Notes under the pieces: model-generated | The model's database searches: none | What the model saw: the letters and a program-made list of their open reading frames with translations, nothing else | Told to the model about the DNA's origin: nothing | Assembly (NCBI GenBank): GCA_013115145.1 | Contig: JAAPAO010000007.1 | Span: 1-64,000 of the forward strand | Reading direction: 5' to 3' | Length of the DNA: 64,000 nucleotides | Source: Perkinsus chesapeaki ATCC PRA-425 | Taxonomy: Eukaryota > Protista > Perkinsozoa | Shown: piece after piece, positions 2,358-58,000 of the stretch | Layout: the number at the start of each line of letters is the position of its first letter | Numbering within the stretch: the first letter of the stretch is position 1 | Translations under genes and position numbers: made by a program

Positions 2358-2891
2358 GATGTTACGGTGTTGATGACTACCACGTAAACGTCAGTAAGAC
2401 CAGAGTGGAAGACGGCGATTTCTTTTGGTGCCATTTTCTGGTCTCCCGCTTGGGCCCCCACTTTGATGACGTGTAGAATAACATTGCATTCCTTCCCCTT
2501 ATTCTTCTTCTCCTCTAGTGCTACAGTTATCTCCCCATTACCTTGTCTATTATTGTGGTTTGAATACCGTTTATTGATGATAATACTTACATCAAGGATA
2601 CGAGAAGGTAGCTGTTCCTATCCACATTACCAGTTCAACAGCAATTGTCGATAACACTTTTCGACGACGACTTGGACCACTTAGTTGCTATTCTCGTAGT
2701 TGTGCTAGCAAGCGTTGTGCTGCTGTTCGAAAAGTTTCGACAATCATAAGGCGAGTAACGCTACTGAAGTTGTGCTCTATAGGAGCAGAGATAGTACATT
2801 GTTGAGTTGTTATTACCGCTGGACGCGCGTTGATGGAGAGCTTCTAAATGGGTACGGGTGAGGGGTACTGAAGTCGCCAGTTGTTGCGGAT

Positions 2892-17171: not shown

Positions 17172-17243
17172 CGCCTTGGATTCTTCCTTAATATCGGCTA
17201 TTTCAGTTTGTCGTGTTGTGGTTGTTGTTGTCGTTGTTTCAAT

Positions 17244-33477: not shown

Positions 33478-34081
33478 TTATGTCCATAGCCGAGTCTCCT
33501 CGCGTTCTGTTGACTCCGATGTGACGTTTACGGTGCCATTATTGTACAGGGAATGCTCGATCAAATGGGCCTCGAATCTAGCTTGTAGATCAGCTAGACG
33601 CTGTTCGAGTTCACGTATTCGTGACTGAGGAGAATAAAGATAACATACTGAACCATTCGCACTTATTGATGCCAAGAAAGTACGCTCCAAAAACGAGTCC
33701 TACCTGTTGTTCCTGTACTGCACCAGTCAAAATCGCAATCAAGTCCTGATATAAGACGGAAAGGGTGTCTTGCCCTTCAGATCGATGGACCACTTCGGGC
33801 AATAACCGTTCCAGATCCTGAGAGTAAAACGTCAACAAATTGGGACCACAAGACAACGCGCAAGACCATTATGAGCTAGTACAAGTACTCACCTGTGCTA
33901 TAAAGCCAAATCGCCGCCGATCAGCCTCTGCGCCGGTTTGAGAGTCAAGTTTGAATGCGACCGGTCGTAGCTCCCTGAGCAGTTGCGAAGCCGGGCCATC
34001 ACGGTCAGCCTCCGCCTCTCCACTAGTTGGCTCGAGAGCAACAGAGAGCGGTGTAATATCTCGCTTCAAACGACGATCACT
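33478..34081 (-). other. Intramolecular chaperone autoprocessing (peptidase S74) domain plus coiled coil
   Basis: Spliced LTTT-SDRRLKRDITPL...LLRELRPVAFKL...RFGFIAQ|DLERLLPEVV...LSVLYQDLIAILTGAVQEQQ|SRIRELEQRLADLQ matches the S74 signature (S-D-x-R-L-K, L.PV.F, GFIAQE, V.Y..L..L..A.QE). The catalytic Ser codon is at 34079-34081. Confidence 0.9.
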
Positions 34082-37000
34082 TGTTGTTAATGCAACGTCA
34101 GCTGTCCAGGTACCTGAATGAACATTGAAGACATGTTGCCGATCCTAAGCGTTATGAAGCGGTTCTGCACGCCATCGAGCCAGAATTGCTACTCGCGGCT
34201 TACCGTGTAAGGTTCCCGTGCCTGCTTCAGTCGCTGATATGACTCGAGTAGAGCCAGCGTACAACTGGAAGCTACCCAAGCGGACGAAGCTTCGAACCGA
34301 AAGGCTGCTTCCGAATGTCGCGAAGTCGACGACAGACAGCTTGCTGCCTAGCCGCGCGAATGATCGCAACGACAGAGATGATCCAAAGCTAGCCACTTGT
34401 ATGACGGAGAGCTGATTAGCGTACGTATTGGTGAGCACGCTGAGGGCTGACCCCAGATGTGCCGAATCCCGTAGTGATAAGACGCTACCCAACCGTGCGA
34501 AGCTCCTCATTGAGACGGAGCTGCCGAAATTCGCTGCGTCGAGAACAGACAGGCTACCGCTAACTCTCGTGTACGATAGTGCCGAAAGGCTACTGCCTAG
34601 TTGGGCAACACCTGCAGCTGATACTTGATTCGCATAAGTAGCATCAGATATGGTCAACGTAGAACCAGCATCAATATGTCCCAGGACAGAGATACTGCTT
34701 CCCAAGCGAGCGAATGATCTTAGAGAGAGGGTGCTTCCGAAGCTGGCAAAGTTGATCAACGATGTAACACTTCCCAGTCGAGCGAATGATCGCAGAGATA
34801 TAGAAGACCCAAAGTTGACCAAGTCAAGAGCTGATACCTTGTTAACATAGGCGTAGTCTGTTGTACTCTGCACCGAGCCGCAAGTGAGCGAGCTCGTGAC
34901 TGACAGGCTGCTTCCTACCCTCGCGAGCGAACGCAAGGAGAGCGAGCTGCCGAAGGCCGTCATGTCATAGACAGAGAGTCTGCTGCCAAGGCGGCCGAAG
35001 CTTCTCAAAGAGAGTGCCGATGCGAAGTTTACCAAGTCCAGAATGGACACCTTATTCACATAAGCATAGGCCGTCGTGCTCTGTACTCCACCGAAGTGGG
35101 TCACACCTTGGACACTCAAACTGCTTCCGAGGCGAGAGAATGATCGAAGGGACAGCGAGCTAGCAAATGACGCAGTGTCATAAACTGACAAGATGCTGCC
35201 AAGACGGCCGAAGCTTCTTAATGAAAGGGACGAGCCCATCACGACTTGGTCGATAACTGATACCCTGTTAAGATACTGCGAGCCAATAACGCTCTGTGTA
35301 TCACCAAGGTTGATAAGATTAGCCACCGAAAGGCCACTACCCAGCCGACAGAAGCCTCTCAGAGATAAAGAGCTGCCAAGCACCGCTTGGTCAAATGAAG
35401 ACAATCTCGACCCCAAGCGCGAGAATGACCGGAGCGATAGGGAAGAGCCGAAATGTATTGCATCAAGTGCGGATACCTTATTGACGTAGGCATACCCTAC
35501 CGTACTCTGAACATCACCAAGGTGCATCACACCAGTTACAGAGAGACCGCTTCCCAAACGAGCAAGGCTCCTCATCGATAGCGAGCTACTAATAACAGTA
35601 TAGTCAAGAGCGGTCAACTTCGAACCAAGTCTTGCATATGACCTCAGCGACATAGAAGAGCCGAAGTTAGCTAAGTTGAGGACCGAGAACCGATTGACCA
35701 CAGTGTTATCAGTAACAGATAATGTGGAGCCAGCGTAAACCCCGCTAGCGGCCGAGACGCTACTGCCCAGACGAGCTGCACTGCGGAGAGATAGTGTACT
35801 TCCAAAAGTGACGAAGTCGACAATAGAAACTCGGCTTCCAAGCCTTCCGAAGGATCTCAGAGAGAGGCTCGAAGTGAAGCAGATCTTGTCAAGAACAGAG
35901 ACCTTATTGAGGTAAGCGTATCCCACTGTGCTCTGAGTAGAGCCTGCCGTGATACCATCGAAGACTGATATCGTGCTGCCGAGTCGCATGAAAGTTCTCA
36001 ATGAAAGAGAGCTTCCGAAGGATGTGCAGTCGAAGACTGATTGTTTGCTTCCTAGCCTTGCGAAGGATCGCAGTGACAAAGAAGAACCGAAAACACCTCC
36101 GTCAAGGATTGATAGCTTGTTAGCGAAGGCGACACCGATAGCGCTCGTTACTCCGCCCATGCGGGTAACACCGGCTATAGATATTGCGCTACCTAGCCTC
36201 GCTATTGCCCTCATGGAGACGCTACTACCGAAGGCCATGAAGTCGAGTACGGAGAGCCGACTGCCAAGCCGCCCGAAGGACCGGACAGACAGTGATGAGC
36301 CGAAGTTGACGGAGTCAAGAGCAGATAACTTATTAGCGAACTGACTGCCGAGAATACTTAGTGATGATCCGAGCCTTGTCTCCGACAGCACCGACACCCC
36401 ACTCCCGAGCCTCGATACACTACGGAGCGATAACGCGCTTCCGAACGATGCATAATCCGCTACGCTAAGCTTCGATGAGAGGCGGGCAAAGGATCGCAGC
36501 GATAGGGAGGAGCCGAAGTTGCCGAAGTTGAGAACAGAAATACGGTTCAGAAAGCTGTGGCCAATAAGACTGATTGGGCCACCGAAGTGGGATGTGCCTG
36601 TGACCGAAATGCCACTGCCCAGGCGAGCTTGACCTCGCAGAGACAGAGAGCTACCAAGCGCAGCATAGTCTAGTATGGACGACTTGCTTCCGAGACGAGC
36701 GAATGACCTCAGGGACAGCGAAGAACCAAAGTTAACATTGTCGTAGACACTTAGGGACTGGCCGTATTGAGCCGTGTTGCCGACGCTATGGGTAGAGCCA
36801 GTGACGACTGTAGTACCGAAGACGGATATAGTGCTGCCCAACCGAACGAAACTTCTGACCGATAGGCTGCTGCTCAGCTCCACGACATCGAGCGCTGATA
36901 GCTTGCTACCCAGCCTTGCAAACGAGCGTAGCGAGAGCGATGAGCCGAAGTTGGCAGTGTCAATGACGGATAGTCTATTGCTACAGAAGTTGCCGAGCAC

Positions 37001-40000
37001 ACTCTGAGTTCCTGTAATGCGAGCTACACCGGTCACCGAGATGCCGCTGCCAAGGCGAGCAATGCTCCTCAGCGATAAACTGCTACCCAAGCCAACGAAG
37101 TCCACCACGGAGAGCCGAGATCCAAGCCTTGCGAAGCTACGCAAAGAAAGCGAGGAACCGAAGGTAGCTATATCATTAACAGAAAGCTTAGTCACAAAGG
37201 CGTAGTCGGCAACGCTGTGATAAGATCCCAAGAATGCCGGAGAAGCGATGGAAACACCGCTGCCTTGCCGAGTGAAGCTGCGCAGAGACAGAGAGCTACC
37301 TAGTGCCACGTAATCGAGGCCGCTAAGCTTACTGCCCAGCCTAGCGAAAGACCTCAGAGATAACGATGAGGCGAATTGGCACTCCGATGAAACGGACAGG
37401 GTCGTCAACCTCGTTGTCGAGTATGCCCGAATCGTACTGCCGAATTGAGTCGTTGAGCCGACACTCAAGGAGCTTCCCAAACGAGCAAATGAGCGCAGAG
37501 ACAACGAGCTGCCAAAAGCACTGAAATCGGTGATGGAGGCTGTGCTACCGAGTCTCGCGAATGATCTTAATGACAACGATGAGCTGAAGTGGGCGGAGCC
37601 AGCAGCCGATACGGCGTTCAGGTAAGTAGCACTGCCTATACTCTGAATGGTACCAAAGCGAGTTACACCAGCAACAGATAGTGAGCTCCCGAGGCGCCCG
37701 AACGCTCTCAAAGAAAGGCTGCTGCCAAAGTTGCTCATGTCGAATATGCTGGCTGTTGACCCAAGCCTGGCGAATGAGCGCAGTGACATAGTCGAGCCGA
37801 AGTTAACGTGGTCCAGGGCAGAAACCTTGTTCACATAGGTGTAGTCGGTGATGCTTTGCACGCCGCCCATGTGGAGCGTACCAGCAACTGACAAGCCGCT
37901 ACCTAGCCTTGCGATGGCTCTTAGGGAGAGAGAGCTTCCGAAGCTAGCGGAATCCAGGGTCGAGAATGTAGCACCGACTCGCATGAAAGACAGAACGGAC
38001 GCTGAGCTACCGGCCCGGACGAGATCATTAGCACTGAGTTTTTGGAAGTACGCCGAGCCTTGTGTGCTAAGGTAGCTTCCAAGACAAACCTCACTGGCGA
38101 CCGAAGCAGTGCTGCCTAGCCGAGAGAAGCCCCTTAAAGATAGAGAGCTTCCCAGAGCAACGTAGTCAATACAACTTGCCGTGCTACCCAGTCGACTGAA
38201 GCTTCTCAGAGACAGGCTAGAGCCGAAACTAGTGTGGTCCAGAATCGACAACCTATTACCTGTCTTGACTCGTCCCAAAACCGACACGGAACTTGCAAGC
38301 CGGCCAAATGCCCTGAGGCTAAGACTGCTTCCAAAGACCGTGTAGTCTAGCACGCTGACTTTGCTAGCGAGTCTGGTGAAGCTCCTGATTGATAGAGAGC
38401 TACCCATATGTGCGAACTTCACCACCGAAAGGCTACCACCAGCTCGAGCAGCGCCCAGTAAGGAAGCGCACGATCCCAGACGCGCAAAGGAGCGTAACGA
38501 CAGCGTTGAGCCATATGATGTTTGCGCCAGAAGCGAGAGGCTCGAGCCGAGCTTGGTAGCCGCACCAACTGACAGACCTGACCCAAGGCGGGACATCGAT
38601 CTCATTGAGACAGAACTGCCGAGCACAGCGTAGTCCAAAACGCTGGTTGCCCCACCGAACCTAGCGAAGCTCCTCAGTGAGAGGCTCGAGCTGAAGCTTC
38701 CGCTCTGAACGATAGAAAGTGCACCACCAAATCTTGCGTTGGACACGGCGCTAATGGCTCCTCCAGCGTGAGCAGTGCCGACCAGACTCAGCGATGAGCC
38801 GAAGCGAGCGAAGGACCGGAGGGAGACCGAACTCGCCAGGATAGCCTGGTCGATCACAGATAGTTGGTAGAGACTGCCAAGCCTGACAAGACCAAGAACG
38901 GACACACCGCTCCCAATTCTTGCAAAAGACCTTAAGGAGAGTGAGCTGCCAAGTTCAGTCTGCTCAAGAACAGAAATAGCACCGGCAACTCTGGCGAACG
39001 ACCTCAAGGACAAGGATGATCCGAACGCTGTACAGTCGACGACGCTGGCACTACTGCCAAGGCGGGCGAAGCTCCTCAAGGATAGACTGCTACCGAAGTT
39101 GCCGTAGTCCACGAGGCTAACTTTGCCGGAGAGTAGAGCGAAGCTCCTGATAGACAGGGTGGAAGCAAGGTTTGCGAGATTAACTGCGCTGAGAGCACCA
39201 CCATAGTGAGCGGACCCGAGAGCTGACAAAGAACTGCCGAGCCTCGCTGCACTTCTGAGTGATAGACTGCTGCCAAAGGCAACGGCATCAAGAACACTGA
39301 GTGTAGAGCCCACGCGGAGGAAAGACAGCGCACTTGCCGCAGAGCCAACATGTGCTGCTGAGAGAACACTCACAGAGCTCCCTAATCTCGCAAATGATCG
39401 CAGAGATAAGGCCGACCCGAAAGAAGAAAGACCAAGAACTGATTGCCTCGCACCAAGGGTAGCGCTGCCAAGAAGGCTCAAGCTACTACCTAACCTCTGA
39501 GACGATCTGAGGCTTACTGAACTTCCACAAACAGCATAGTCGAGAGCGGATAGCTTGCTACCGAGGCGAGCGAAAGATCTCAGAGAAAGACTGCTGCCGA
39601 AAGAAGCACTGCCGAGGACGGAAGACGAAGAGCCAAGTAATGTATTTCCCAGGACTGAGATACCGCTTCCTAGTCTCGCGAAACCTCTCAGCGAGAGGGA
39701 ACTGCCGAGCTCCGCCACACCGACTACAGAGATAGCAAGTCGAGAGCCGAAGCGAGCAACCCCTTCAACCGAGAGAGAACTACCAACACGCACAGCTGCT
39801 CGTATAGAGAGGCTGCTTCCAAACGTTGTATAGTCCATAACCGTTAGTTTGCTGCCTAGCCTGGCGAAGCTTCTAAGGCTCAATGAGGATCCGAAGTGAC
39901 CCTGCTGGAGCACAGATAGTTCCGAACCATAACGGGCGGAACCGAGAGCGGAGAGACTAGAGCCAGCAGCCAGCGGACTGAAGACGGAGATAGACGAGCC

Positions 40001-43000
40001 CAGGCGAGCAAAGCTTCTGAACGACAGAGAGCTACCAATAACGGCATAACCTAGGACCGACATCTTGGAGCTGAGGCGAGCCAGCGAGCGGATCGAGAGA
40101 GAAGAACCGAAGTTCACCTCGCCGATTGCGCTCAAAGTGCTACCGAATCTCGCACAGCCGATGGCTGACACTCTCGAACCAATAGAGGCAGAGGCTACCG
40201 TAGACACGGAACTACCGATTCTGGCGAAATTCCTCAGAGAGAGCGAGCTGCCGAATTCTATCGCGTCAAGAACGGAAAGCTTGCTACCTAGCCTGGCGAA
40301 GCTCCTCAAGGAGAGCGACGACGCGAAGGCGGTGGAGGCTATAATAGAAAGCTTGTAGGCGGAACCAAGGCGGACCAAACCAGCAACTGAAAGGCCACTG
40401 CCGATGCGCTGGAATGATCTCAAGGAAAGCGAGCTGCCGACCACAGCATAGTTGAAGACCGAGGCCGAACTGCCGCAGCGCGCGAACGATCGCAATGAGA
40501 GGCTTGAGCCGAGGCTAGCCTGCTCGATAGCAGAGAGTCGACCACCAAACATGGCATTTCCAACTGCTGATACAGCCCCACCGATACGAGCAACGCTACG
40601 AAGAGACAGTGAGCTGCCGAGTGTGGCGAAATCCAGCACGGTGATATGGCCCGATAGACGAGCGAACGACCTCAGCGATAGAGACGACCCAAAGGAGGCA
40701 TGCGACACGGTAGACAGGGATGCCCCGGTGTTAAGGAGGCCAACCAGAGAAGCTGAGCTTCCCAGTCGTGCTACTGTGCGTAGGGATAACGAACTGCCGA
40801 TCTGGGTATAGCTCAGAGCACTCACCTTGTCCGACAGGCGAGCAAAGCTCCTCAGTGAGAGTGATGAACCAATGTTGACAACTCCGATAATTGATGCAGA
40901 ACCACCTATAGGAGCATTTCCGATAGCTGAGACTGAGCTACCCAGCCTAGCGAACGATCTCAGGGAAAGAGCTGAGCTGAAAGACGTTGCGTCAATGGCA
41001 GATACTGAGCTTGCTATACGGACCTTGGACACCACGGACAACGAGCTACCGAGACGAAGATAGGTCCTCAGCGAGAGAGAGCTACCGAGAGCGACCATAT
41101 CAAGAGCACTCGCGCGACTTCCCAGTCTGGCAAATGACCTCAGGGAAAGGCTGGAGCCAAAACTGGTTGAAGAAACCGCACTCAGTGTCGAGCCGACTCT
41201 GGCAAAGCCGCATGTGCTGAGCGTTGCACCCGAATAAATAGAGCTGACAATGCTGACAGCTGATCCAAACCGAGCAAAGCTCCTCATAGACACCGAGCTA
41301 CCAATCGTAACTTGGTCTATAACCGACAAGCCGTATACACTGCCTAGACGAGTGAGGCCTAGCACAGAGAGTCCACTTCCGAGCCGGGCAGAGTTACGCA
41401 GAGACAGAGAGCTGCCAAGAGTAGCATAGTCAACGATAGATGACTTGCTACCGAGACGAGCAAATGACCTCATAGACAAGCTGGATCCGAATGCCACTGC
41501 ATCCAGAGTAGACAGAGTGCCTCCAACCCGGCCGAAGGATAAAGCAGAAGCTGCGCTACCGAGAGTAACAGAGCCATAGGCTGAAAGACTGCTTCCAAGC
41601 CGAGCGAATGCGCGGAGCGAAAGCGAGCTTCCGAAAGCGCACTCACCAACCACAGACAATGCGCCGCCAACCTTTGCAGCAGAAAGAGCACTGATAGAGC
41701 TACCAAGGCGAGCTAATCCTCGCAGTGATAGAGAGGATGCCAGCAAAGTGCAATCCAATGAAGACACTGCTGCCGACATACGCGCAAATGATAGGGCTGA
41801 CAACTCTCCACCCATTCGAGTATCTCCAAGAAGACTTACACCACTACCGAGGCGGGCGAATGATCTTAGGGAGAGACTGGAGCCGAACGAACCCACCGCA
41901 AGCACTGATAAGGATGAAGCAAGTCGACAATCACCAGCAGCGCTAAGGGAGCTTCCAAAACGAGAAGATGCTCTCAAGCTGAGAGTGCTTCCTAGAGTTG
42001 TGAAATCTAGGACAGAGAGCTTGCCTCCCAATCTCGCAAACGATCGAAGACTCAGACTGCTGCCGAACTCACAATGATCCACCACGCTCATGGCGGAGCC
42101 AAAAACGGCGGTACCAACAGCCGAGATCGAACTGCCAAGACGAGCGAAAGACCTTAAAGACAGGCCGCTTGCAAGTTCCGCGGTATCGATCACACTTAGT
42201 GACTGTCTGGAACCGAAACGCGCCAGTCCGTCAACCGACAGGGTGCTACCAAGGCGGACGAAGGAGCGTATAGACAAGGAACTACCTATCATGGCAGTGT
42301 CATAGACGCTAAGCTTGCTGCCAAGACGAGAGAATGACCTCAAAGACAGTGATGAACCAAAGGTCGTTTGGCTTAATGTAGACAAGTCAGCGCCATAGCG
42401 TGTCGTGCTCGATGCCGACAGTACGCTGCCCAACCGGACTCCACTAGTAGTGGATAACGAGCTCCCGAGGCGTGCAAAGCTCGCCAATGACAAGGAGCTT
42501 CCAAACGAGGAGCGATCGAGGACTGAAACGTACCCCGACAACCGTGCAAAGCTACGTAGCGACAGGCTGGAACCGAAGTCGGCACAACCAACAGCACTCA
42601 TAGCCGATCCGAGATAGCCGCTTGAAGCAGTAGATAATGAGCTACCCAACCTTGCTGCTGATCTTAAGGACAAGCAGCTGCCAAAGGCCGCCATGTCGAC
42701 GACAGAAGCCTTGCCTCCGAGACGAGTGAAGGATCGAAGTGATAGAGATGAACCAAACAGTACACCTCCCAGGACCGAAGCAGTGCTGCCTAGCCGAGCT
42801 AGGGAGACGGCTGACAGTTGGCCACCAGTTCTCGCAGACCCGGCTACCGAAAGACTACTTCCAAGCCGAGCAAAGCTCCGTAGTGATAGTGAACTAGAGA
42901 AGTGAGAAGAGCTTATGACTGACAAGGAGTAGATAGAGCCAATGCGTGCAAGTCCTGATAGCGATGCCGAGCTACCAACACGGAAGAAGCTTCGGACGGA

Positions 43001-46000
43001 AAGGGAGCTGCCTAGCATCACGCTGTCGAGCACGCTCGCAGTACTTCCTAGCCGAGAGAATGAACGCAGAGACAAGCTGCTACCGAACTCTGCCTGTCCG
43101 AGAGCGCTGATGGACGAAGCTGCAGCAAGTTCTCCGACGAGAGATAAGGCACTGCCGAGCCGTGAGAATCCTCGTAGTGACAAAGAGCTACCCAAATCTG
43201 CGGCATCAACCACAGAGAGCTTAGATCCTAGTCGGCCGAAGCTGCGGAGCGACAGACTTGAGCCGAAGCTCGCCGCTCCAACTGCTGAGCATGTTGCACC
43301 AATACGAGCATCACTTAAAACGGATATAGATGAGCCACCGGTAAAGGTTGAGGCCACCGAGATAGCACTTCCAAGGCGAGCCACAGCTCGGAGTGATAAC
43401 GAGCTACCGAAATCAGCAAAGTCTAATACCGACAACTTGCTACTGAGCCGAGCGAAGCTCCTAAGGGATAGGCTCGACCCAAAGTGTACAGCACCAAGGG
43501 CACTGACAGCGTCACCAATTCGACTGCATCCCAAAGCCGAGAGGCTTGAGCCGCACTCAGTCGCGAGCCGAACAGAAAGGCTGCTGCCAAGACGAGCGAA
43601 GGACCTCAGAGAAAGAGAACTTCCTAAGTGGCCCTCTGCAATAAGGGAGAGTTTATAAACCGAGCCAATGCGTGCAAGGCCTAAAACCGATAATCCGCTT
43701 CCGAGGCGACCGCCTGCCCTGAGTGATAGTGAGCTGCCGCACTGGGCGAAGTCAAGAATACTGATCTTGCTTCCCAGTCTGGCAAATGACCTCAGAGAGA
43801 GTGATGATCCGAAGGTTGCTGAGTCTGCGGTAGATAAAGTTGAGCTGAACCTTGCAACGCCAAGAGCAGAGAGCGCTGAAGAAGCATAAATCACGCCTGT
43901 CACTGATAAGCTGCTGCCGAGGCGAGCAAAAGATCGGAGCGATAGGCTTGAAGCAAAGTTTACGGAGTCGGCAATGGACGTCACTGCCATGGATCCGCAG
44001 CGCACGTATCCCAGAACTGAGAGGCTGCTGCCTAACCTGGCATGCCCTCGCAAAGAGAGTGAGCTACCCAAAGCGATCTTATCCAGCACTGACAGTTTGC
44101 TACCAAGTCGAGCAAAAGACCTTAGAGATAGTGAGGAAGCGAATGATGCCTGCTCCATAACCGATATATGAGAACCGACCCTCGCAGAGCTCAAAGTAGA
44201 GAAAGCGGCTCCAGCGGTCACCGTGGATGCAACTGACAAGCTGCTGGCTAATCGAGCGAAAGATCTTATAGACAAGGAGCTTCCGAACGATCCGCTGTCG
44301 ATGACTGAAATCGAGCTAGAAGCCCGTAATCCGCCTATTAGAGATACGCTGCTTCCCAGTCGCACCAACCCACGAAGAGACAGGCTTGAGCCGAGGTTGG
44401 CAAAGTCCAGTGCGGAAACCGAAAGACCAAGACGAGCTCTACTGATGGTACTCAGGGAAGAGGAGCCAGTCATTGCGCCAGTAACGGAGATACCACTGCC
44501 AAGCCTAGCAAAGCTTCGCAGTGATAGGCTGCTCCCGAAAGCTGCGCTACCAAGACTCGACAATGAGCCGGCAACGCGAGCGAACGAGCCGAGAGACAGG
44601 CTGGAGCCAAGATGAATCCAGCTTACAATAGACATTGAGCCGCCGAGTCTACCATTACCTACGGCTGAGACGGAACTGCCTAATCGTGCAAAGGAGCGCA
44701 AGGAGAGACCGCTCCCGAACGATGTTAGACCAATTGCGGATAGAGCCGAAGAGAGCTTCACATTTGCGAGAGCACTGATGCCGCTGCCTAGCCTGGCAAA
44801 CTGCCGCAAAGAAAGGCTACTACCAAACGACGCTTCCTCAAGCACCGATAGCTTACCACTCATACGCGCGAAAGACCTGCAACTCAGACTGCTGCCCAAT
44901 GTGACATAGTCCACAGTGGAGAGCGCGCTGGAGATACGAACACTTGCGAGTGAGCTAATGGTGGATCCAAGCCGAGCAAAGCTGCGGCATGAGATAGAGC
45001 TGCCAAAAGACGCTAACCCTATCGTAGATAGTTTGTAAACCGATCCCACTCTTGCAAGCCCGAGCACGGATACAGAGCTTCCTAGACGGCATGCTGACCT
45101 CAAGGATAGCGAGCTGCCCAGGTTAACGTAGTCGATCGCTGAGCACTTGCTACCGAGACGGGCAAAGGATCGGAGAGACAATGACGAACCGAAAGCAGCC
45201 TCACCAAGGACTGACAGAGCCTCACTCAGGCGCGTCGCAGACTGTACGCTCAGGGTGCTCTGCATTCTCACTGCTCCGAGAACCGACACCGAGCTTCCAA
45301 CGCGAGCGAACGATCGCAATGACAAGGCAGAGGCGAAGCTCGCACCTTCGATAACCGACAGTCTATAGAGAGATCCAACACGGGCGAGTCCTAGCATAGA
45401 CACCGAGCTTCCAAGTCTAGCAGCAGATCGCAGAGACAGGGAGGAACCGAACGAAACTTGGCTTAAGGCCGAAAGCTTGCTACCTAATCGCGCGAAACTT
45501 CTTAGTGACATGGAGCTACCAATAGAGGCTTCAGAGAGGAGACTGAGTTTGCTACCCAGGCGACTGTAAGATCGCAATGACATCGAGCTGCCGAAGTTCG
45601 CAGCGCAAATGACCGAGACACTTGAACCTGCATATGCTGCACCAACTGCGGAGAAGCTGCTACCAAGGCGACCGAACGACCTTAAAGAGAGAGCACTCCC
45701 TAGTGTAGTGAAGTCCAGCACTGTAGTATAGCTGCCAAGGCGGGAGAAGCTCCTCAAAGAGAGAGACGAGCCAAAAATGGCTTGACCGAGCACGCTGGTA
45801 GATTCACCCACTCGAGCGGATGCCAGGGCAGAAATAGCGGAGCCCACCTGTGCAACCGAGGCGATAGACAAGCTGCTTCCAAGCCGACTAAATGATCTCA
45901 AAGAGAGTGAACTTCCAAAGGCTGCTGAGTCCAATACGGAAATCTTTCCGCTGAGCCTAGAGAAGCTCCGGAGCGAAAGAGACGAACCAAATGCAACCTG

Positions 46001-49000
46001 ACCAAGTGCGCTCAAGGATGAGCTGAGATCTGCCGCGGCCAACGCTGAAAGCGTCGACCCGATTGTCGTAGACCCTGTAAGGCTGACAGTGCTCCCCAGT
46101 CTGGCGAAGCTACGCAGAGACATAGAGCTACCAAATTCAACGCGATCCTGTACCGATAGAACGCCACCGAGTCGCGTGAATGCACGGACTGACAAAGCCG
46201 AGCCAATGTTGGTGAAAGAGACAGCTGAAATAGAGGCTCCGCACTTGAGGAAGCTCTCAGCCGAGATAGAACCACCCAGCCGCATATAATTGCGCATTGA
46301 GATGGAGCTCCCAAGAATAGCAAAGTCTATAACACTCAGCTTGCTACCCAACCTAGCCAAAGACCGCAGGGAGAGCGAGGAAGCCAAGTGGGTTGAAGAC
46401 ACCACGGAGAGCGTAGCGCCGTAGACACCAGAGCCAACAGCAGACATCGACGATCCCAGGCGAGCAAAGCTCCTCAGTGAGAGGCTGCTCCCTACAGTGA
46501 ACGAATCGAGAATACTCATCTGCGACATAGACCCCACTCTGCATAGACCAAACACGCTCAAGCTGCTACCCAGCCTCGCGGCGCCGCGCAGAGATAATGA
46601 GCTTGCAAAGTAAGCTACTTCCAACACTGAGAGTTTACTGCCTAACCGAGCAAACGATCGAAGCGATAAGCTTGAGCCGAAGGCTGTACTTCCGAGGGCA
46701 GAGACAGATGCACCAAGTCTGGTATGCCCCAGAGCAGACGCTGCAGAGCCTACCTGCGCTCCGCCAGTGACAGATATGCTGCTACCCAAACGGGCGAAGC
46801 TGCGCATTGACACGGAGCTGCTTAACTGGGCGAAGTCTAGAGCGCTGACGTAAGATCCGAGACGGGTGAATGACCGCAGGGATAATGTTGAGCCGAACAC
46901 CACAGAATCAAGCACCGATAAAGTGCTCGATGCCCTAGTAATTCCGATCACCGAGAAGTCACCAGAGACTCGGGCAGTTGATGAGGTTGACAGGGCACTG
47001 CCCAGCCTAGCAAAGCCTCGTAAGGAGAGCGATGAGCTAAGGGTAGAAGAGGCAATGACGGAAAGCTTGTACACAGAACCGACACGAGTTAGGCCGAGCA
47101 CCGAAGCGCCACTGCCTAGCCTTGCGAAGGAGCGAAGCGATAAAGAACTCCCCAAAGTAGTCATATCCACAGCACTGAGTTTGCTTCCCAACCGACTGAA
47201 GCTCCTTAGCGACAAACTGCTACCGATGCGGAATGCTCCAAGTACAGAAGTAGCATCACCAACTCTTAGCGACGATAATGCAGACATCGCAGAACCGACA
47301 TGTGCTGTTCCCGATATCGAGAGGCCGCTTCCTATTCGAGCGAAGGAACGAACAGAAATGGAGCTGCCAAGATCTGTATAGTCGAGGATGCTGCATCGCG
47401 ATGATAGCCTACCGAATGACCGGATAGATATCGTGGAGCCGCATCGCATCGCGTCGAGAACAGACAGACTTCCATGGAGCTTGGTAGACCCCAAGATGGA
47501 CATACTGCTTCCAAGACGAGCAAACGATCGGAGAGAGAGTGAAGAGGCGAGGCTAGTACTTGCGATTGTAGAAAGCTGATAGCACGAGCCAATACGAGAA
47601 AGTCCGGCAACCGATAGACCACTGCCAAGACGAGCTGCACCTCGGAGTGAAAGCGAACTGCTGAGAGCAGCATAATCGAGGACACTCAAGCTCCCGCTAA
47701 GCCGAGCGAATGAGCGCAATGATAAAGATGATCCAAGCGACGTTTGTGACACGGCTGATATAGTGCTACCGAAGGTAGATGCTCCAAAGAGGGACATGGA
47801 GCTTCCAAACCGTGCATAAGACCGCAATGACACTGTGCTGCCTAACGTGAGGCTGTCGAAACATGAAAGACTTTGGAAGGAACCGCATCTTAGTAGGCCG
47901 TGAACAGATAACCCACTTCCAATGCGAGTGGCTGCTCTAACCGATAAAGAGCTTCCCAGAACCAGGAAGTCTAGTACCGAGACGTGACCGCCAATCCTAC
48001 CGAAGCTTCGTACGGACAACGAGGAGCCAAGCGAACACCAATTGATAGTGGAAACCGAGCTAGCTAAGCGAGCGCTCGATCGAAGAGAGAGTGAGCTACC
48101 AAGAGCAACATAATCCAAGACGGTAAGCTTACTACCAAGCCTAGCAAACGACCTTAGAGAGAGCGACGATGCCAGTGTGTTAGACGCTATCACAGATAAC
48201 TTGTATGCAGACCCAACCCTCACGAGGCCGAGGACCGATACACCACTGCCGATTCTTGCATAGTTCCGCAGCGACAGCGACGAACCGAAGTTCACGGCTG
48301 ATATAACGGAAGAGGTATAGGCAGAACCCGCGCGGATAAGGCCTAGTATGCTCGCGCCACTCCCCAGCCTGGTGAATGACCGGATTGAAAGTGAACTACC
48401 GAAAGCTGCCTGTCCGAGGGTCGAAAGAGCAGATGCTAGACGGGCTGTACGCTTCAATGACAGGCTAGATCCAAAGCTTGCTGCTTCTAGTACCGAGAGA
48501 CTCCCAGCTACACGCGCGCCGAGGGCTGCCGAGATAGAACTACCCAGTCTAGTGAAGGACCTCAGCGAGAGTGAAGACCCGATACCAGTCTGTGAAATAA
48601 CAGACAAGGACGACCCGGCAGATGTCACACCAAGAATGGAAAGATAGCTTCCCAGCCTCGCCAACGATCTCAGAGATAACGAGCTACCTAAGCTAGTATA
48701 CTCTAGAACACTCACTCGGCTGCCAACACGAGCGAAGCTCCGTATAGATAGGGTAGAGCCGAAGTTCGAAGCTCCAACAGCGCTAAGAGTTGCCGCCGCA
48801 CGCGCGCTTCCTAGAACGCTGACTCCCGAGCCCAGGCGAGCAAAAGCTCTGAGTGATAAGCTCGAGGCAAAGCAGCTCTGACCGATTACAGAGAGCTTAT
48901 AGACAGATCCAAGTCTAGCCAAGCCCGTGACACTAAGACCACTTCCTAGCCGAGCGAAAGCTCGGAGAGAGAGTGCCGAACTTAAGCACGTAAAGTCTAC

Positions 49001-52000
49001 TGTTGAAGCACTGCTACCCAGTCTTGCGAACGAGCGCAGTGAGATGGAAGAACCGAACGTAGCCGCATCGACACAGGACACCTTACTGCCCAGTCGAGCA
49101 AAGGAGCGTAAGGAGAGAGAAGAACCAAACGCGCTGGCGCCTACCAGCGATATAGAGCTTGCCAACCTCATCGCGGCTGATGTAGATAGCGAGGAACCCA
49201 AGCGAGCAGCGCTCCTTATGGACAATGAGCTACCGAAGGAGACAGTGTCCATGACACTTAAGCGGCTTCCGAGACTCGCCAGTGATCGAACCGAGAACGA
49301 AGACCCTAAGCACGTAGCGTCCAGCACCGAAAGAGCGCTAGAGAAGTGGACCTCATTCTGGATGGAAAGAGTTGAACCGCCAGAAAGGGCTGATCCGGCT
49401 ACACTGAAGGCGCTACCAAAGCGGACAAAGCTTCGGACACTCAGGCTGCTGGACATACAGACGAAGTCCATAACTGATAGCTTGCTACCGAGTCTAGAGA
49501 AGCTGCGGAGTGACAGTGACGAGCCGAAGCGAGTCGAGTCGAGGACAGACACTGTACTACCCAGACTGGCTCGAGCGGTGGCTGATAACGAGGACCCCAG
49601 CCGCACCATACCACGCAGTGAAAGGCTACTAGAAATGGTAGCGAAGTCGCAGACGGTCATACACGAACCCAACCGACCGAAGGATCGGATCGAAAGTGAG
49701 GAGCCGAAATGAGCATTGCCAAGCGTAGATAGGGTGTCACCGAAAGTGGAATCAGCACTTACTGATAGTGAGCTTCCTAGTCTTGCAAAGGACCTGAGAG
49801 ATAAGCTGCTTCCAAGCTCTGTGTAGTCAACCACCGAAATAGCTGAGATTGAGCCAAAGCGGAAGAGACCCACGATAGACAGACTACTGCCTGCTCGAAC
49901 AGCAGAACGGATCGACATGGTGGACCCGAAGTTGACGTAATCGATCACACTCAGTTTACTACCGAGTCTGGCGAACGACCGAAGAGAAAGCGAGCTTGCC
50001 AGTGTAGTGTGTGAAAGCGCAGTCAAAGAGGCACCCAATTTACAGGCGCCTAAGGATGATACCGAGTCTTTCACTCTGGCAACTCCCAGGATCGAAATAC
50101 TGCTGCCAAGGCGAGCAGCACCACGTAGGGAGAGGCTGCTACCGATGCATGTAGAATCAAGGACACTGATTCGACCGGAAAGACGAGAGAACGATCTCAA
50201 TGAGAGTGAAGAGCCAAATGCTAGAGCTTCCAATATCGATACCTTCCCAGAGATCGAGCTGCCTAGAGCAACGCTGAGTGAGCTTCCCAAACGTGCGGCT
50301 GTTCTGAGCGAGAGCGAGCTACCCAGATTGGTGTAATCAAGGGCTGTCAATTTGCTACCCAACCGCGCCAAAGATCGCAGTGATAGAGATGATCCGAAGT
50401 TAGCGAAGCACACAACCGAGATAGAATCTGATAACCGACAGCCACCTAGTAACGACGCCGTTGAACCAAGTCTGGCGAAAGATCGAACTGATAGAGCCGA
50501 ACCGAGAGAAGTCAGCGAGACGGTCGACAGCTTATAGACAGAGCCCACTCTTGTGATACCGGCTACAGAAAGACCGCTTCCGAGACGAGCCGCGCCTCTC
50601 AAAGAAAGGGTGCTGCCAAGGTGGATAAAGTCCAGCACTGAAGCAAACTTACCGACCTTGGCGAAATTACTTATAGAAAGAGAAGATCCAAGGTTGGCTA
50701 GGTCTACAATGCTTGTAGCCCCGCCAATGCGTGCGAAGGATCTTAGCGACAAGGAGGATCCGAAGTTGACTTGACTGCATACCGAAACAGCACTGCTGAA
50801 CGTACCAGTGCCGATGGCCGACACGGAGCCGCTCAATCGGGCAAACGACCTTAGTGATAGAGAGCTACCGAATGCCACACCTCCAAGAACACTAGTTTGG
50901 CTAGCTAGTCTGGCGAAAGACCGGAGAGAGAGGGATGAGCCGAGGCTTGCAAATTCGACTACACTGCAGCTGCCTCCAAACCTCCCATAGCTTAGTGCGG
51001 AGAGAGTCGAGCCAATGCGTACTCGTTCAGCAACGGAAACATCATCAGATAACCGGGCAAAGCTGCGAATGCTCAGAGAAGACCCGATGTTCATGTAGTT
51101 GAGCAGCGATGCCCTCGAGCCAAGACGTGCGAACGAGCGGAGGGATATGCTAGATGCAAATCCGGCGGCATCCAATACAGATAGGACCGATCCAGCTCGA
51201 GCCGCGCCGAGAATAGACATTTGAGAGCCCAGTGTCGCAGCTCCGATAACCGAAGCCGAGCTTCCAAGACGGCAGAAACTTCTTAGCGATAAGCTGCTGG
51301 CAAAGGTGGTTCCGGCTACCACCGATAGTTTATACAGTGACCCGATGCGCGCGAGACCAGTGACAGAAACCGAGCTACCGAGTCGAGCGAAACCTCTAAG
51401 AGAAAGGCTGCTTGCTAAGACGGCGGCGTCAAGAGCGGTCAGCGAGCTCCCAAGCCTTGAGAAGGATCTTAACGACAGTGATGAGCCGAAATGGCCACAC
51501 CCAGCAACGCTCAAGGAATCACTGAGTCTGCTAGCCGCCAGGATGGATAGGTCAGCAGAAGCTCGTACTGTCGAGGCAACACTTACGGTACTGCCGAGTC
51601 TGGCGAAAGACCTCAATGAAAGCGACGAGGCGAACTGTGCACCGGAGATCACCGAAAGTGCATACAACGATCCAGCTCTAACCAAGCCAGTAGCCGACAG
51701 CCCACTACCGAGACGTGCGAAGCTTCTAAGCGAAAGAGAGCTTCCCAGCCCACTGGTGTCGAGGACACTTAGGCCACTGCCCAATCTCGTTGCTGCCAAA
51801 GACGATACCATAGAGCCACATTCAACAGCACTGAAGATGCTCACAGATGAGCCTAGGCGAGTGAAGCTCCGAAGAGAGAGTGAGCTGGCTAGGGTCACCG
51901 CATCCAGTGAAGATACCTTACTTCCAAGCCTTGAGAAGGAGCGAAGAGATAGTGATGATCCGAACGCTACCGAGTCGGCAACGGAGAGAGAACCGGTAAG

Positions 52001-55000
52001 ACGGCTGGTCGCCAGAACGGAAGCTCCAGAACCTAGCCTTGCGAAACTTCTAAGTGATAGAGACGAGGCAAAGCTAGACGAGTCCAGAGCTGAGAGGGCA
52101 CCAGAGAATTTACTGAATCCAAGGGCAGACACGGTGTCGCCGGTAGTGATACTTGACCTCACGCTTAGAGCAGAGCCGAGACGCGATGCACTTCGAAGAG
52201 ACAACGAGCTGCTTAGAAGGACAGAGTCAAATGACGACGTCAGTCCTCCAAGTCTGGCGAATGAACGAAGGGAGAGCGATGAGCCGAAAGCTGAAGATCC
52301 CAAAATTGAGACCCTGTCGCCGAGAGTGGCCGCAGAGTATACCGACATCACGCTGCCAATACGGGAGAACCCTCTCAATGACAGCGAAGAGCCTAAAGCG
52401 CTCATTCCCAAGGCAGACAATGAAGACCCCCAAAGAGATGATCCATAGGCCGACACTGCGCTGCCAAACCGTGCAGTGACACGGATCGATATGGAACTAC
52501 CGAGAGCAACACAGTCGAGTATAGACGCCTTGCCTGAAAGTCTTGCAAATGATCGGAGCGATAGGGTAGAACCGAACTCAGTCTGGGCAAGGACCGACAA
52601 AGAGTCGCCGAAGGATGCTGATCCTAGAACAGAAATCGAAGAAGCACCGACGGTAGATCCTGTTACAGATAGAGAACTGCCGAGCCTGGCAAAGGACCTC
52701 AGCGACAAGCCAGAAGCAAGATTGCAGGTGTCTAGCAGCGAAATACCGTACACAGAACCGAACCTTGCTAATCCCGTTACAGACAGGGAGCTCCCAAGGC
52801 GAGCAACACCCCGCAAGCTTAGCGATGAAGCGAGTGCAGCTGCATCCATCACACTCAGCTTGCTGCCCATACGAGCGAACGACCTCAAGGATAGAGAAGA
52901 CCCGAAGTGGGTGTGGCTCAAGACCGTTACGGCTCCGCTTACTGCCGCTTGAGAAAGGATCGATACTGAGCTGCCTAAGCGCACCAATGCCCGAACGGAA
53001 AGGCTAGATCCAAGACTCGCGAAGTCAGTCATGCTTAGCTTACTGCCCAGACGTGAGAATGATCTAAGCGAGAGCGAAGAACCAAAGGATGTACAATCGG
53101 CTACAGAGCATGACGAAGCCATGCGGGCCAGACCGAGGGCTGACAGCGAACCCATGACTCGAGCATCAGACTTCACCGAAATTCCGCTGCCGAGTCGGGC
53201 TATTGTACGGAGAGACAAGCTACTGCCTAACGACACGTAGTCGAGCACAGACAATGTGCCAGAGAGCCTTGCAAATGACCGCAGGGAGAGAGATGAGCCA
53301 AACGACACCTGCTCGAGAACAGACTGTTGGCCACCGATGCGCGCTAGGTTACGAATAGAGAGGGACGAGCCGACGTTAGCGAACGACGCCACAGATATCG
53401 ATGACGCTGCTCTAGCCATACCCAAGATAGACATGGAACTTCCGAGCCTGGCCATGCACCGCAATGACAGGGAACTAGCGAAGGAAACCGACTCGGTCAC
53501 TGAGAGCTTACTTCCGAACCGAGCAAATGACCGAAGTGATAACGAGGAACCTACCTCTGATGTACCGACAACAGAGCAGGCTGATCCCAAGCTTGCGGCT
53601 CCATAGGTAGACAAGGAAGATCCGAGCCGAGCGAAGCTTCGCAAGGAAAGAGAACTGGCGAAGTTCGTAGCAGCCAAGACAGAGATTCTATATAGCGATG
53701 CGAGCCTTGTGAGACCAGCAACTGATAGACCGCTTCCAAGCCTTGCTGCACCGCGGAGAGATAGTTGGCTGCCGAGGAGGACGTAATCAACAGTAGACAG
53801 AGAGCTGCCACAGCGAGTGAAGCTACGAACGGAACAGCAAGAGCCTAGACTACTGAAGTCTAGCGCTGATATATGCCCACCGATTCGGGTTCGGTCCAGT
53901 ATCGAGACGGACGACCCAATCCTACAGCGCCCAAGGACGGATGTGTAGGAGCCCACGCGAGCAGCACATCTCAAACTAAGGGACGAGCCAAGATTGGCAT
54001 AGTCCAGAGCAGTGAGCTTCGAACCAAGGCGGGCAAAGGATCTTAGCGACAAGGTGGAACCAAACTCAGCCGCTTCAAGTGCAGAGACAGCCGAAGCCAA
54101 CCTTGTGGCGCCTAATATCGAGAGGTCGGAGCCTAGTCTTGCGGAGCCTCGAAGAGACAAGCTGCTGCCAAAGTGCACATAGTCTAGAACACTCGCCTTG
54201 CTCGAAAGACGAGCAAAGCTTCTCAACGATAATGAGCTGCCCAATGCGAAGCTGTCTAGCAGCGAGCACGAGCTGCCCAGTCTAGCGCTGCTCATGAGCG
54301 AAGCTGACGAGCCTAACCGTGTTACCGCTCTCAATGACAGAGACGATCCGAGAGATGTCGAGTCGATGACACTAAGGTGATAGACAGAACCAACTCGAGC
54401 CAAGCCTAGGATCGATACACCACTTCCACAGCGAATGAAGTTTCTGACGGAGAGAGCGCTGCCAATCTGTATGAAGTCTAGGACAGATGCCTTACTGCCG
54501 AACCGACCGAAGGATCGTACTGACAAGGAGGAGCTGAAGTGGGCGAAGCTGAGGGCCGAGATGGAGGCTCCTAGCCTGGCGAGCTCCTGGATTGAGCACG
54601 CGCTACCTATAACACCTCCACCAACCGTTGAGATACTGCTACCAAGACGAGCAAAGTTGCGCAAGGAGAGAGAACTACCGAAAGCAGCAGCGTCAAGAAC
54701 AGACACTTTGCCGCAAATACGAGCAAAGCTCCTCAGTGATAGGGTACTACCGAATTCGGCCTTACCAAGAACCGTGAGTGCGTCGCCGAACTTCGCTACC
54801 GAAATGACTGACAATCCGGAGCTGACCCTTACCGTTTCCTTGATAGATATGGCGCTTCCTAACCTAGCGAAGGATCGTAGACTGAGGGAACTCGCTAGTG
54901 CCGCTTGATCCGTCAGCGACACTTTGCTTCCGAGTCTTGAGAAGGACCGCAGTGAGAGGGAAGAGCCGAACGAAGTCGAACCGAATGCGGACAAGACATC

Positions 55001-58000
55001 ACCGAATCTGGCGAAGCTCTGGGAAGAGACGGAGCTGCCGAAGTGTGCAGGAGCGACCACAGAGATACCGCTGCCAAGCCGAGCAAAGCTGTGCAAAGAC
55101 AACGACGACCCAAGATGAGTGTAACCCACAACCGAAAGCTCGAGAATAGAGCCGAACCGTAGGACGCCTGTGACACTCATTGCGGAGCCTATCCGGGCAA
55201 CAGCTCGAACACTCAAAGTAGAACCTAGTTGCACGTAGTCCATGACGCTTATATATGAGCCCATTCTTCCGAATGACCGCAATGATAGAGAGGAGCCGAG
55301 ATAGACTTCCTGTACTGTCGATACCATCTCTCCGATACGAGCTGTTGAGAAAACGCTGAGCGAGCTACCAAGCCGAGAGAAGGAGCGCATCGATAGAGTA
55401 GAGCCCAGATGAGCGAAGTCAAGGACTGTTGTTCGACTGCCGAGACGAGCAAAGCTCCGTAGAGACAGAGAGCTGCTAAAGGTGGCACGCTGAAGAACCG
55501 ATACACAGGAGCCAGCTCGCGCGAAGCTTCGCAGGGAGAGTGAGCTACCGAAGTGCGCAGTGTCGACGATGCTCACAGAAGCGCCGAGGCGAACAGTGCT
55601 TACTGCTGATAGACCGCTACCAAGGCGGAGAGCAGTCCTCAGGGACAGCGATGAGCCCAACTGCACGTAGTCGATGATGGAAGCCGCGGAACCAAGCAAG
55701 GCGAACGACCGAATAGAAAGCGAAGATCCGAGTTGTGTGGCGTCCACAACCGATAGTGTTGAGGCAAATCTCACACCATTAGTAACGGAGAGAGCGCCCT
55801 TGATCTTAGTCACCCCAACCACAGACACGCTGCTGCCAAACCTGGCCATAGCGCGGAGAGACATGGATGAGCCGATAACAGTGTAGTCCAGGAAGGATGC
55901 CGCGCCGGAAAGTCTCGAGAAAGACCGAATAGAGATGGAGCTGCCGAATGTGGCCGATGCAATGACAGACACTTTATAGACAGAACCTATGCGGGCCAGT
56001 CCAGTAACCGAGAGGCCTGAGCCAAGACGGGCCATAGCGCGAAGGGACAAGGAAGAGCCGAGTCCAGTGCATCCGAGAGTGGATAGAGCATCAGCCAAAT
56101 GGGTTTGTCCTACCACAGAGCAAGAGCTGCCCAGTCTTGTGAAGGATCGGAGCGACAAAGAGCTGCTGAAAGCAACACTATCAGACACAGAAAGGACACC
56201 GCCCAGTCTCGAGAAAGAACGGAGTGATAGAGATGAGCCAAAGTTCGCTGCACCCAGGGCCGACACCGCATCACCGAGGCGCAGTTGGCCAATGACGGAC
56301 GCCGTTGAAGAGAGCCGCGCTACACTTGCCACTGATATCCCGCTACCCAGGCGAGCCATGGACCTCACCGAAAGCGAGCTGCTGAAGGTGGTAGAGTCTA
56401 TCACAGAGAGCTTATACACCGAACCTACTCTAGCGAGGCCTGTAACCGAGAGGCCTGAGCCAAGCCGAGCTACACTTCTCAGTGACAACGAGCTACTAAT
56501 AAGCACGAAGTCTAACACAGACTGTGAGCTTCCGAGCCTCGCGAAGGACCGGAGTGACAAGGAGGAGCCGAAAGTAGCGAAGCTTGTGACAGAGGTCTTG
56601 CTGCCCATCCGGGAGAACGCTCGCAGCGACAGACTGCTGCCGAGGTTCACATAGTCCAGGATAGAACTCTTCGACCCGAGCCTTGCGAAAGAGCGTAGGG
56701 AAAGAGAGCTACCGAAGTGAGCTGCACCAACAACAGAGACTGCGGCACCGACATTCGCTGAGGCCAACGATGAGACAGCGCTGCCGAGTCGAGCTGTACT
56801 TCGAAGGGACAATGAACTACCGAGCGTAGTGAAATCGAGGATAGTAGCTTTACTGCCAAGTCTCGCAAAGCTGCGGAGTGACAGCGAAGATCCCACAGTG
56901 GTCGCGCTGATGGCAGATAAGCTGGAGCCAATGCTAGCAGCCCCGTACGCAGATACCGAGGATCCCAGCCGCAGGAAAGTCCGAAGGGACAGTGAGCTAG
57001 CAAGCGTCGTGTAGTCGGTAGCGGACACCTTGCTGCCTAGTCTAACGAATGACCGTAAAGATAGCGATGATCCGAACAGGCAAGCTCCGACTGTGCTGAC
57101 CAGCGAGCCACACGAAGCTGTGGCAAAAGCAGAGACTGATGACCCGAGACGAGTGAAGGCTCGTAGGGACAGACCTGACCCGAAACTGACGGAGTCTAGA
57201 GCCGACAAAGATTCTCCAACCCTAGCCAAGCCAAGTACTGAAGCAGAGCTACCGCCTCTCGCCACACCACGCAATGAAAGCGAGCTTCCCAAGGTTGTGT
57301 AGTCCAAGATCGACAGCTTCGAACCCAAACGAGCAAAGCTTCGAAGAGAAAGGGACGAGCCGAATTGAACAAGTCCAAGCACCGACTGAGCAGAACCAAG
57401 CCTTGCGTAGGACAAGGTAGACAAAGAGTCTGATAGTACTGTCTGTGAGACAACCGATATACTGCTGCCTAGCCTGGCACAAGCTCTCAATGAGAGCGAT
57501 GAGGCCAGTGCAACGTTGTCAATAACGGAGAGCTTGTAACAGGATCCCACCCTCAGCAATCCTAATACGGAGGCGCCACTGCCCAATCGAGAAACGGATC
57601 GGAGTGAGAGAGAGCTGCCCAGTTCAGCTTCGCTGAGCACGCTGAGCTTCGAGCCAAGTCTGGCGAAAGATCTGACCGATAGAGAGGAGCCGAAATGTGC
57701 CGCATCGAGAGCTGTCAGCGATTTGCAGTAAGTTCGACCGAGAACAGAAAGTGATGATGATGCTGTAACTGGACCGACAACACTGATTGAGCTACCAAGG
57801 CGGGCAAAGCTCCTCAGCGAGAGGGCACTACCGAGGTTTACCCCATCGAGGACAGATAGCCTTCCAGCAATCCTTTGGCTTGAACGGAGAGACAAAGTGC
57901 TAGCAAAGTTGACATAGTCTACAATGCTGAGCCTGCTGCCAAACCTAGCGAAGCTTCTCAGAGATAGGGAGCTACCAAAGCTGGACTGTCCGAGTACAGA

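Follow-up and report, generated by a model that had tools for sequence, protein, structure and literature searches.

Where does a giant repeat gene end when the open reading frame (ORF) that covers it stops inside an intron? We address this question for a 64,000-nt stretch of the Perkinsus chesapeaki ATCC PRA-425 genome (contig JAAPAO010000007.1, positions 1 to 64,000; C3170:1-64000), hereafter the window, whose minus strand carries a gene for a protein made of dodecapeptide repeats. All positions follow the window numbering unless they are given as contig positions. In the mechanical ORF list, the minus-strand frame is recorded at 34145..64000 and terminates at a TAG codon (34147-34145). This TAG is in frame and lies within a 90-nt GT-AG intron, 19 codons past a GTAAGC donor at 34203. 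The first-pass annotation of the locus had held that the ORF track truncates the protein by running into this intron, and that an autocleavage domain is hidden behind three introns; our analysis bears out both statements. The segment 33478-34204 is most probably the genuine 3' terminus of a single very large Perkinsus gene, composed of short 5' exons, a 65,938-nt repeat exon and three 3' exons that carry a complete ICA/Peptidase_S74 domain. The features of this end are as follows.

34204..64000, minus strand: the window part of the repeat exon (dodecapeptide GSxxSx7 repeats), recognized from a frame without stop and from repeat statistics
Up to 34204, minus strand: 3' end of the repeat exon, a short non-repeat linker (...GTLH) plus the first base of a Gly codon, read from the sequence
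34203-34114, minus strand: intron 1, 90 nt, GTAAGC...TTCATTCAG, phase 1, supported by the sequence, the paralogue, the P. olseni donor and the metatranscriptome-derived protein P0002
34145..34147, minus strand: in-frame TAG within intron 1 and end of the mechanical ORF, from the sequence and the ORF list
33893..34113, minus strand: exon 2, 221 nt (73 codons after two bases that finish the Gly codon), encoding the N-terminal half of the S74/ICA domain including the cleavage site, matched by PF13884 and by the home-built profile
34084-34082 and 34081-34079, minus strand: Thr and Ser codons flanking the predicted cleavage bond
34079..34081, minus strand: codon AGT, predicted nucleophile and new N-terminal Ser, at position 1 of the Pfam profile and in a column at least 90% conserved among 39 sequences
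34064..34066, minus strand: codon AAG, predicted general-base Lys, in a column at least 90% conserved among the same 39 sequences
33892-33818, minus strand: intron 2, 75 nt, GTGAGT...CTCTCAG, phase 0, with an in-frame TAA, supported by the sequence, the paralogue and the profile boundary between positions 92 and 93
33704..33817, minus strand: exon 3, 114 nt, 38 codons, the central part of the ICA domain (DLERLLPEVV...QDLIAIL...), matching profile positions 93-130
33703-33625, minus strand: intron 3, 79 nt, GTAGGA...CTCCTCAG, phase 0, frame-shifting if kept, supported by the sequence and the P. olseni acceptor
33478..33624, minus strand: exon 4, 48 codons plus TAA, the C-terminal helical/coiled-coil part of the ICA domain, supported by the P. 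olseni model, a weak profile match and the helix in a relative's model

On direct reading of the sequence, all three introns have GT...AG ends and pyrimidine-rich 3' ends, and the intron coordinates proposed in the first pass are exact. The spliced reading continues the frame across junction 1, from ...GTLH through the split Gly codon into TWTADVALTT, followed by the cleavage site and SDRRLKRDI. The junction peptide as first drawn was right in its SDRRLKRDI part and wrong in placing three Thr residues before the Ser, where the sequence has two. Intron 1 is placed at the boundary between shaft and ICA domain, 10 residues upstream of the cleavage Ser, and the stop codon of the spliced gene is TAA 33480-33478, which gives the ICA domain a length of 149 residues from the cleavage Ser to the stop. 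Exon 2 was also considered as a separate gene; this was rejected because the exon has no Met and no in-frame ATG upstream.

The domain encoded by the 3' exons

Domain matches were computed exon by exon. Exon 2 alone matches Pfam Peptidase_S74 (PF13884) with an E-value of 1.6e-10 and 41.5 bits (cut-off 22) over profile positions 1-47 of 58, and the remainder of the profile falls in exon 3. Exons 3 and 4 are either too short or too divergent to be matched by Pfam on their own. In a six-frame search of the whole 41.7-Mb genome, exon 2 is the best of only three S74 matches (E 1.6e-7). A home-built profile was made from 57 distinct uninterrupted relatives, taken from 72 contigs of a metagenome scan. 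Exon 2 aligns to positions 7-92 of this profile (E 1.8e-21) and exon 3 to positions 93-130 (E 5.4e-12), while the intron-derived translations gave no match to it. With the boundary between exons 2 and 3 falling between positions 92 and 93, the domain is colinear with its uninterrupted relatives, and exactly so for exons 2 and 3.

The Ser-Lys dyad is intact, as the first-pass annotation had stated: the segment reads S-D-R-R-L-K, with the Lys (34066-34064) five residues after the Ser (34081-34079). We aligned the relatives with the window exons as separate rows (alignment A3, 39 rows). In it, conservation reaches at least 90% for S, D, R, L and K of SDRRLK as well as for the LRELRPV and GF.A motifs, and PF13884 is matched by 38 of the 39 members. 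The Ser-x4-Lys arrangement is described as the defining feature of self-cleaving S74 domains (Schulz 2010, Li 2013, cited in bioRxiv 10.1101/2025.09.30.679562). Together, these comparisons confirm at the sequence level that the three 3' exons encode a Peptidase_S74/ICA domain with its Ser-Lys pair intact, the match being well beyond chance.

The fold was approached through a proxy, an AlphaFold2 model of the closest uninterrupted relative (L019), which is 48% identical to exon 2. The model has a pLDDT of 79.7 and combines beta strands and short helices with a long C-terminal helix of high confidence. Nearly every top match of the model in BFVD is a phage tail-fibre, Peptidase S74, ICA or endosialidase-chaperone protein (best E-value 2.6e-4), which gives tentative support to the ICA fold.

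The repeat exon and its relatives

Beyond the window, the frame on contig C3170 stays open for 22,003 codons without a stop. A 44-nt GT-AG intron at contig 100185-100142 precedes the repeat exon and keeps the 12-residue register; therefore the repeats form a single exon of 65,938 nt (contig 100141-34204), about 21,979 codons long. Further upstream (contig 100142-101700), repeat-coding open segments lie in changing frames, which indicates at least six further short 5' exons, and the whole chain comprises at least 22,100 residues. The introns are crowded at both ends of the gene, and the 66-kb middle is free of them.

Ser makes up 25% of the repeat protein, Leu 16% and Gly 11%. From one G[ST]xx[ST] motif to the next, the spacing is exactly 12 residues in 877 of 1,314 cases, and the 878 units anchored in this way have G1 in 100%, S2 in 100% and S5 in 97%. 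The Gly autocorrelation, which needs no anchoring, also peaks at lag 12 (0.51). In all, the 65,938-nt exon holds about 1,830 dodecapeptide GSxxSx7 repeats. Tandem Repeats Finder detected no DNA tandem repeats in this exon, so the repeats are conserved at the protein level only. A word search with the final 500 residues of repeat from the window ORF (9,932 residues) returned no match at E 1e-10.

The metagenome scan identified 72 marine metagenome or metatranscriptome contigs with an uninterrupted ICA domain, which are either transcripts or intronless genes; poly(A) and spliced-leader signals did not tell the two apart. All 72 relatives end in the ICA domain, and nearly all carry the same 12-residue repeats before it; the lag-12 Gly autocorrelation is 0.43-0.71 in the 39 contigs that have at least 300 upstream residues. 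Since the same repeats precede the ICA domain in these contigs, the fusion is widespread among marine eukaryotes. In one contig (L069:2990-3030, JGI Ga0099819_1466316), about 11 residues between ...TLHG and DRRLK are gone, the frame shifts and a stop follows right after TLHG; the copy may be broken, the transcript mis-spliced or the contig wrongly assembled.

Outside this group, tblastn found no pairwise match in 50,697 GenBank phage records, and the genomes of 185,579 bacterial and archaeal species gave no pairwise match either. These negatives indicate that the alveolate form has diverged, and they say nothing on its source. The only viral contig matching the alveolate motifs is a densely packed, phage-like one from IMG/VR (UViG_3300047352_000504, 2665-3318; L013), which encodes an uninterrupted S74 protein of 217 residues with a cleavage site reading SDESTK. 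Exon 2 aligns to this protein up to residue 164 (38% identity), and exon 3 aligns from residue 165.

Age of the introns and alternative readings

Contig C102 carries a paralogue with 56% identity in exon 2 and 74% in the stretch matching exon 3. Its introns 1 and 2 occupy the very same positions in the same phases, with lengths of 49 and 52 nt and with sequences that cannot be aligned to those of the window gene. Introns 1 and 2 are thus older than the divergence of this pair. The genome's third S74 match (C2760:31310-31369, L003) is very divergent, reads ...GLIAQELQTVIPEAV and has no intron between profile positions 92 and 93, where intron 2 lies.

A word search with exon 2, restricted by a length window, returned two short proteins only, and the nearest named protein is from P. 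olseni. This protein, FOZ63_007550 (P0001), is a partial automatic gene model on a 1.6-kb contig. It is 97% identical to the exon 1 tail, 79% identical to the second half of exon 2 and 75% identical to exon 4 over 28 residues, the last match beginning at the first residue of the exon. From these match boundaries, donors 1 and 2 and acceptor 3 are all in use in the P. olseni model. The protein P0002 is an entry of MERC, a catalogue of proteins from 775 marine eukaryotic metatranscriptomes; it is continuous over junctions 1 and 2 (...GTLHGTWTAD...SDRRLKK...YGFVAQELQQVLPGVV).

These comparisons bear on the earlier proposal that the domain has long resided in eukaryotic genomes. In its favor are the introns 1 and 2 shared with the 56%-identical paralogue, the P. 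olseni splice sites, the 72 marine contigs and the candidates in six alveolate species (see below). Against it, introns are poor indicators of age, and the C102 paralogue lacks intron 3, its coding sequence being continuous there. The proposal is thus supported only in part; in spirit, the comparisons are consistent with the domain being an old resident of eukaryotic genomes. Its companion claim, that the domain is typically phage or bacterial, is too narrow: Peptidase_S74 is ubiquitous in polinton-like viruses of eukaryotes (PMC12220804), and according to the preprint (bioRxiv 10.1101/2025.09.30.679562) it is studied in mammalian MYRF.

Several observations weigh against the proposed 3' end. 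The support for splicing comes from sequence comparison, and the P. olseni model lacks both the whole of exon 3 and the stretch of exon 2 that carries the dyad, joining ...GTLHG to the middle of exon 2 and FGFIAQ straight to exon 4 (SRIRELE). The open segment of exon 4 matches the 57-relative profile weakly (E 0.2), with its alignment beginning at the first exon residue, at position 131. The fold comparison rests on a relative as a stand-in, and the BFVD matches of this proxy have low TM-scores (about 0.3). Sequence searches of the PDB with exon 2 and with a three-sequence profile gave no ICA entry, the sole row being a chance match at E 1. Foldseek and VIA-align searches of the PDB with the L019 model matched only the long terminal helix, which dominates the comparison and makes these structure searches uninformative. 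At the other end of the gene, no start codon or signal peptide was found in the contig sequence upstream of the repeat exon. We nevertheless take the sequence to establish how the exons and introns are arranged, what the domain is, that its Ser/Lys pair is conserved and that the repeat spans 12 residues, with the splicing deduced by comparison.

One alternative is that the ICA segment is a decaying relic, in which case the protein would end at the TAG in intron 1, as the uninterrupted ORF indeed does, and exons 2-4 would be untranslated 3' sequence. This is extremely unlikely, since no stop interrupts any of the three exon frames, all of them follow the profile in order (exons 2 and 3 to the exact residue), and the catalytic Ser and Lys are retained. 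Moreover, the exons are 75-97% identical to those of P. olseni, the paralogue has retained the exons with introns that differ in both length and sequence, and each of the 72 relatives found ends in the domain. Even with a complete and expressed domain, the chain could remain uncleaved or be cleaved by another protease, the domain serving for trimerisation and as a folding chaperone. We consider this unlikely, because the Ser-x4-Lys pair with its neighboring Asp, Arg and Leu is intact and nearly invariant in the family, and this is the very arrangement by which self-cleaving S74 domains are defined in the work cited above.

The P. olseni model, in which the Ser-Lys site and exon 3 are lost, probably reflects a prediction error and possibly an isoform. 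If it is an isoform, alternative splicing might yield chains without a working ICA domain, either by retention of intron 1, with a stop after 19 codons, or by skipping of exon 3, which at 114 nt is a multiple of three and would leave in frame; such isoforms could regulate the amount of trimerisable chain. The direct joining of FGFIAQ to SRIRELE in that model and the skipped dyad part of its exon 2 fit this scenario, as does the marine contig L069, which is without 11 residues before DRRLK and shifts frame there. However, the P. olseni entry is incomplete, was predicted automatically and lies on a contig of 1.6 kb, and all 57 profile relatives carry the full domain, which makes regulated isoforms a very improbable reading. 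A related speculation starts from intron 1, which is of phase 1, sits at the shaft/ICA boundary, is kept between the paralogues and contains an in-frame stop. This intron may mark the ICA domain as an exon cassette that exon shuffling joined to the fibre gene, and the intron may act today as a switch controlling fibre output through intron 1 retention or exon 3 skipping. We regard this combined idea as quite improbable; if the switch were real, either event would produce chains unable to trimerise or cleave. The reading that we retain is that of one spliced gene ending in a complete ICA domain.

Elsewhere in the window, two plus-strand ORFs at 17208-19112 (634 residues) and 19625-21574 (649 residues) each contain, in corresponding places, a 3'-5' exonuclease domain (PF01612, with an E-value of about 1e-13), which looks like a tandem gene duplication.

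A proposed model for fibre assembly and comparison with known systems

We then propose a model for how the protein may be assembled, in which trimerisation, cleavage, glycosylation, secretion and fibre length are inferred by homology. Three precursor chains would associate via their C-terminal ICA domains, and the ICA trimer would nucleate the three-chain beta structure of the shaft, whose folding would proceed towards the N terminus. The shaft would be heavily O-glycosylated on repeat positions 2 and 5. After the shaft has folded, the Ser (34081-34079), activated by the Lys (34066-34064), would cut the Thr-Ser bond, releasing the 149-residue ICA fragment and leaving a mature fibre that ends in ...ALTT. 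Such a fibre may be about 1.4-1.8 micrometres long, because it would contain about 1,830 repeats, taken at the preprint's 14 nm per 18 repeats or at its rise of 9.6 Å.

The result corrects the 3' end of a gene that ranks among the largest protein-coding ones of a shellfish parasite. The one domain that accounts for the possible assembly of such a fibre is lost both from a simple ORF reading and from at least one public gene model of Perkinsus. The result also ties Perkinsus to the newly described three-chain glycofibrils, whose possible role in the cell wall, in attachment or in host interaction could be tested in a culturable organism, and the shared intron positions offer an initial indication of how old the repeat-plus-ICA fusion is within Perkinsus. 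What is known of S74 domains and of the family architecture is unchanged by it.

The closest known system is TLP-12, a glycofibril from a pond that was solved by cryo-electron microscopy (bioRxiv 10.1101/2025.09.30.679562). It has a three-chain core of dodecapeptide repeats (G1, S2, S5) and carries large O-glycans on positions 2 and 5. The same preprint lists about 150 candidate proteins in six alveolate species, citing the Perkinsus olseni and P. chesapeaki draft genomes. Its representative is a protein of 19,853 residues from Amoebophrya sp. A120 (A0A8J1ZHD7), whose C-terminal ICA domain is proposed to drive the folding of a triple beta-helix. Judged by its sequence, the window gene is a member of the TLP-12 family: it has the G1/S2/S5 dodecapeptide repeat, a chain in the range of 20,000 residues, a C-terminal ICA domain and an alveolate host. 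The Perkinsus copy differs in being longer, with at least 22,100 residues, and in having its ICA domain split by three introns and its 5' repeats by short introns, whereas exon structure is not discussed in the preprint. The three-chain beta core and the O-glycans of TLP-12 are known from cryo-electron microscopy of the pond fibril, while the Perkinsus protein is known from its gene sequence.

The domain also resembles the C-terminal chaperone of phage endosialidases and tail fibres (PF13884, MEROPS S74), described by Schwarzer 2007 and Schulz 2010 as cited in PMC12220804 and bioRxiv 10.1101/2025.09.30.679562. Both stand at the C-terminus after a three-chain beta fibre, a structure that the Perkinsus shaft is predicted to adopt, and both share the S-x4-K pair, the LRELRPV...GFIAQ core and a length of about 150 residues ending in a helix or coiled coil. 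PF13884 scores above its threshold, and the modest BFVD matches of the proxy model are nearly all to phage S74, ICA or tail-fibre proteins. In contrast to the phage domain, the Perkinsus one is eukaryotic, spliced and placed on a shaft that is tens of times longer; it has no tblastn match in the GenBank phage records, and its one IMG/VR counterpart reaches only 38% identity.

MYRF of animals and MrfA of Dictyostelium likewise are eukaryotic nuclear genes with an S74-type trimerising, self-cleaving domain (Li 2013, Kim 2017, cited in bioRxiv 10.1101/2025.09.30.679562). Compared by description, the MYRF domain is internal and frees a transcription factor from the membrane of the endoplasmic reticulum, whereas the Perkinsus domain is C-terminal and would cap a secreted-type fibre. 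The fibre proteins of polinton-like viruses of protists are also large and modular, occur in eukaryotic hosts and have a single C-terminal S74 domain, but they are viral, reach at most about 3.9k residues and contain laminin G or collagen-like repeats (PMC12220804). A C-terminal ICA domain on giant alveolate repeat proteins has already been described (bioRxiv 10.1101/2025.09.30.679562); the architecture found here is thus not new, and our result is a sound annotation of a spliced Perkinsus member of this family.

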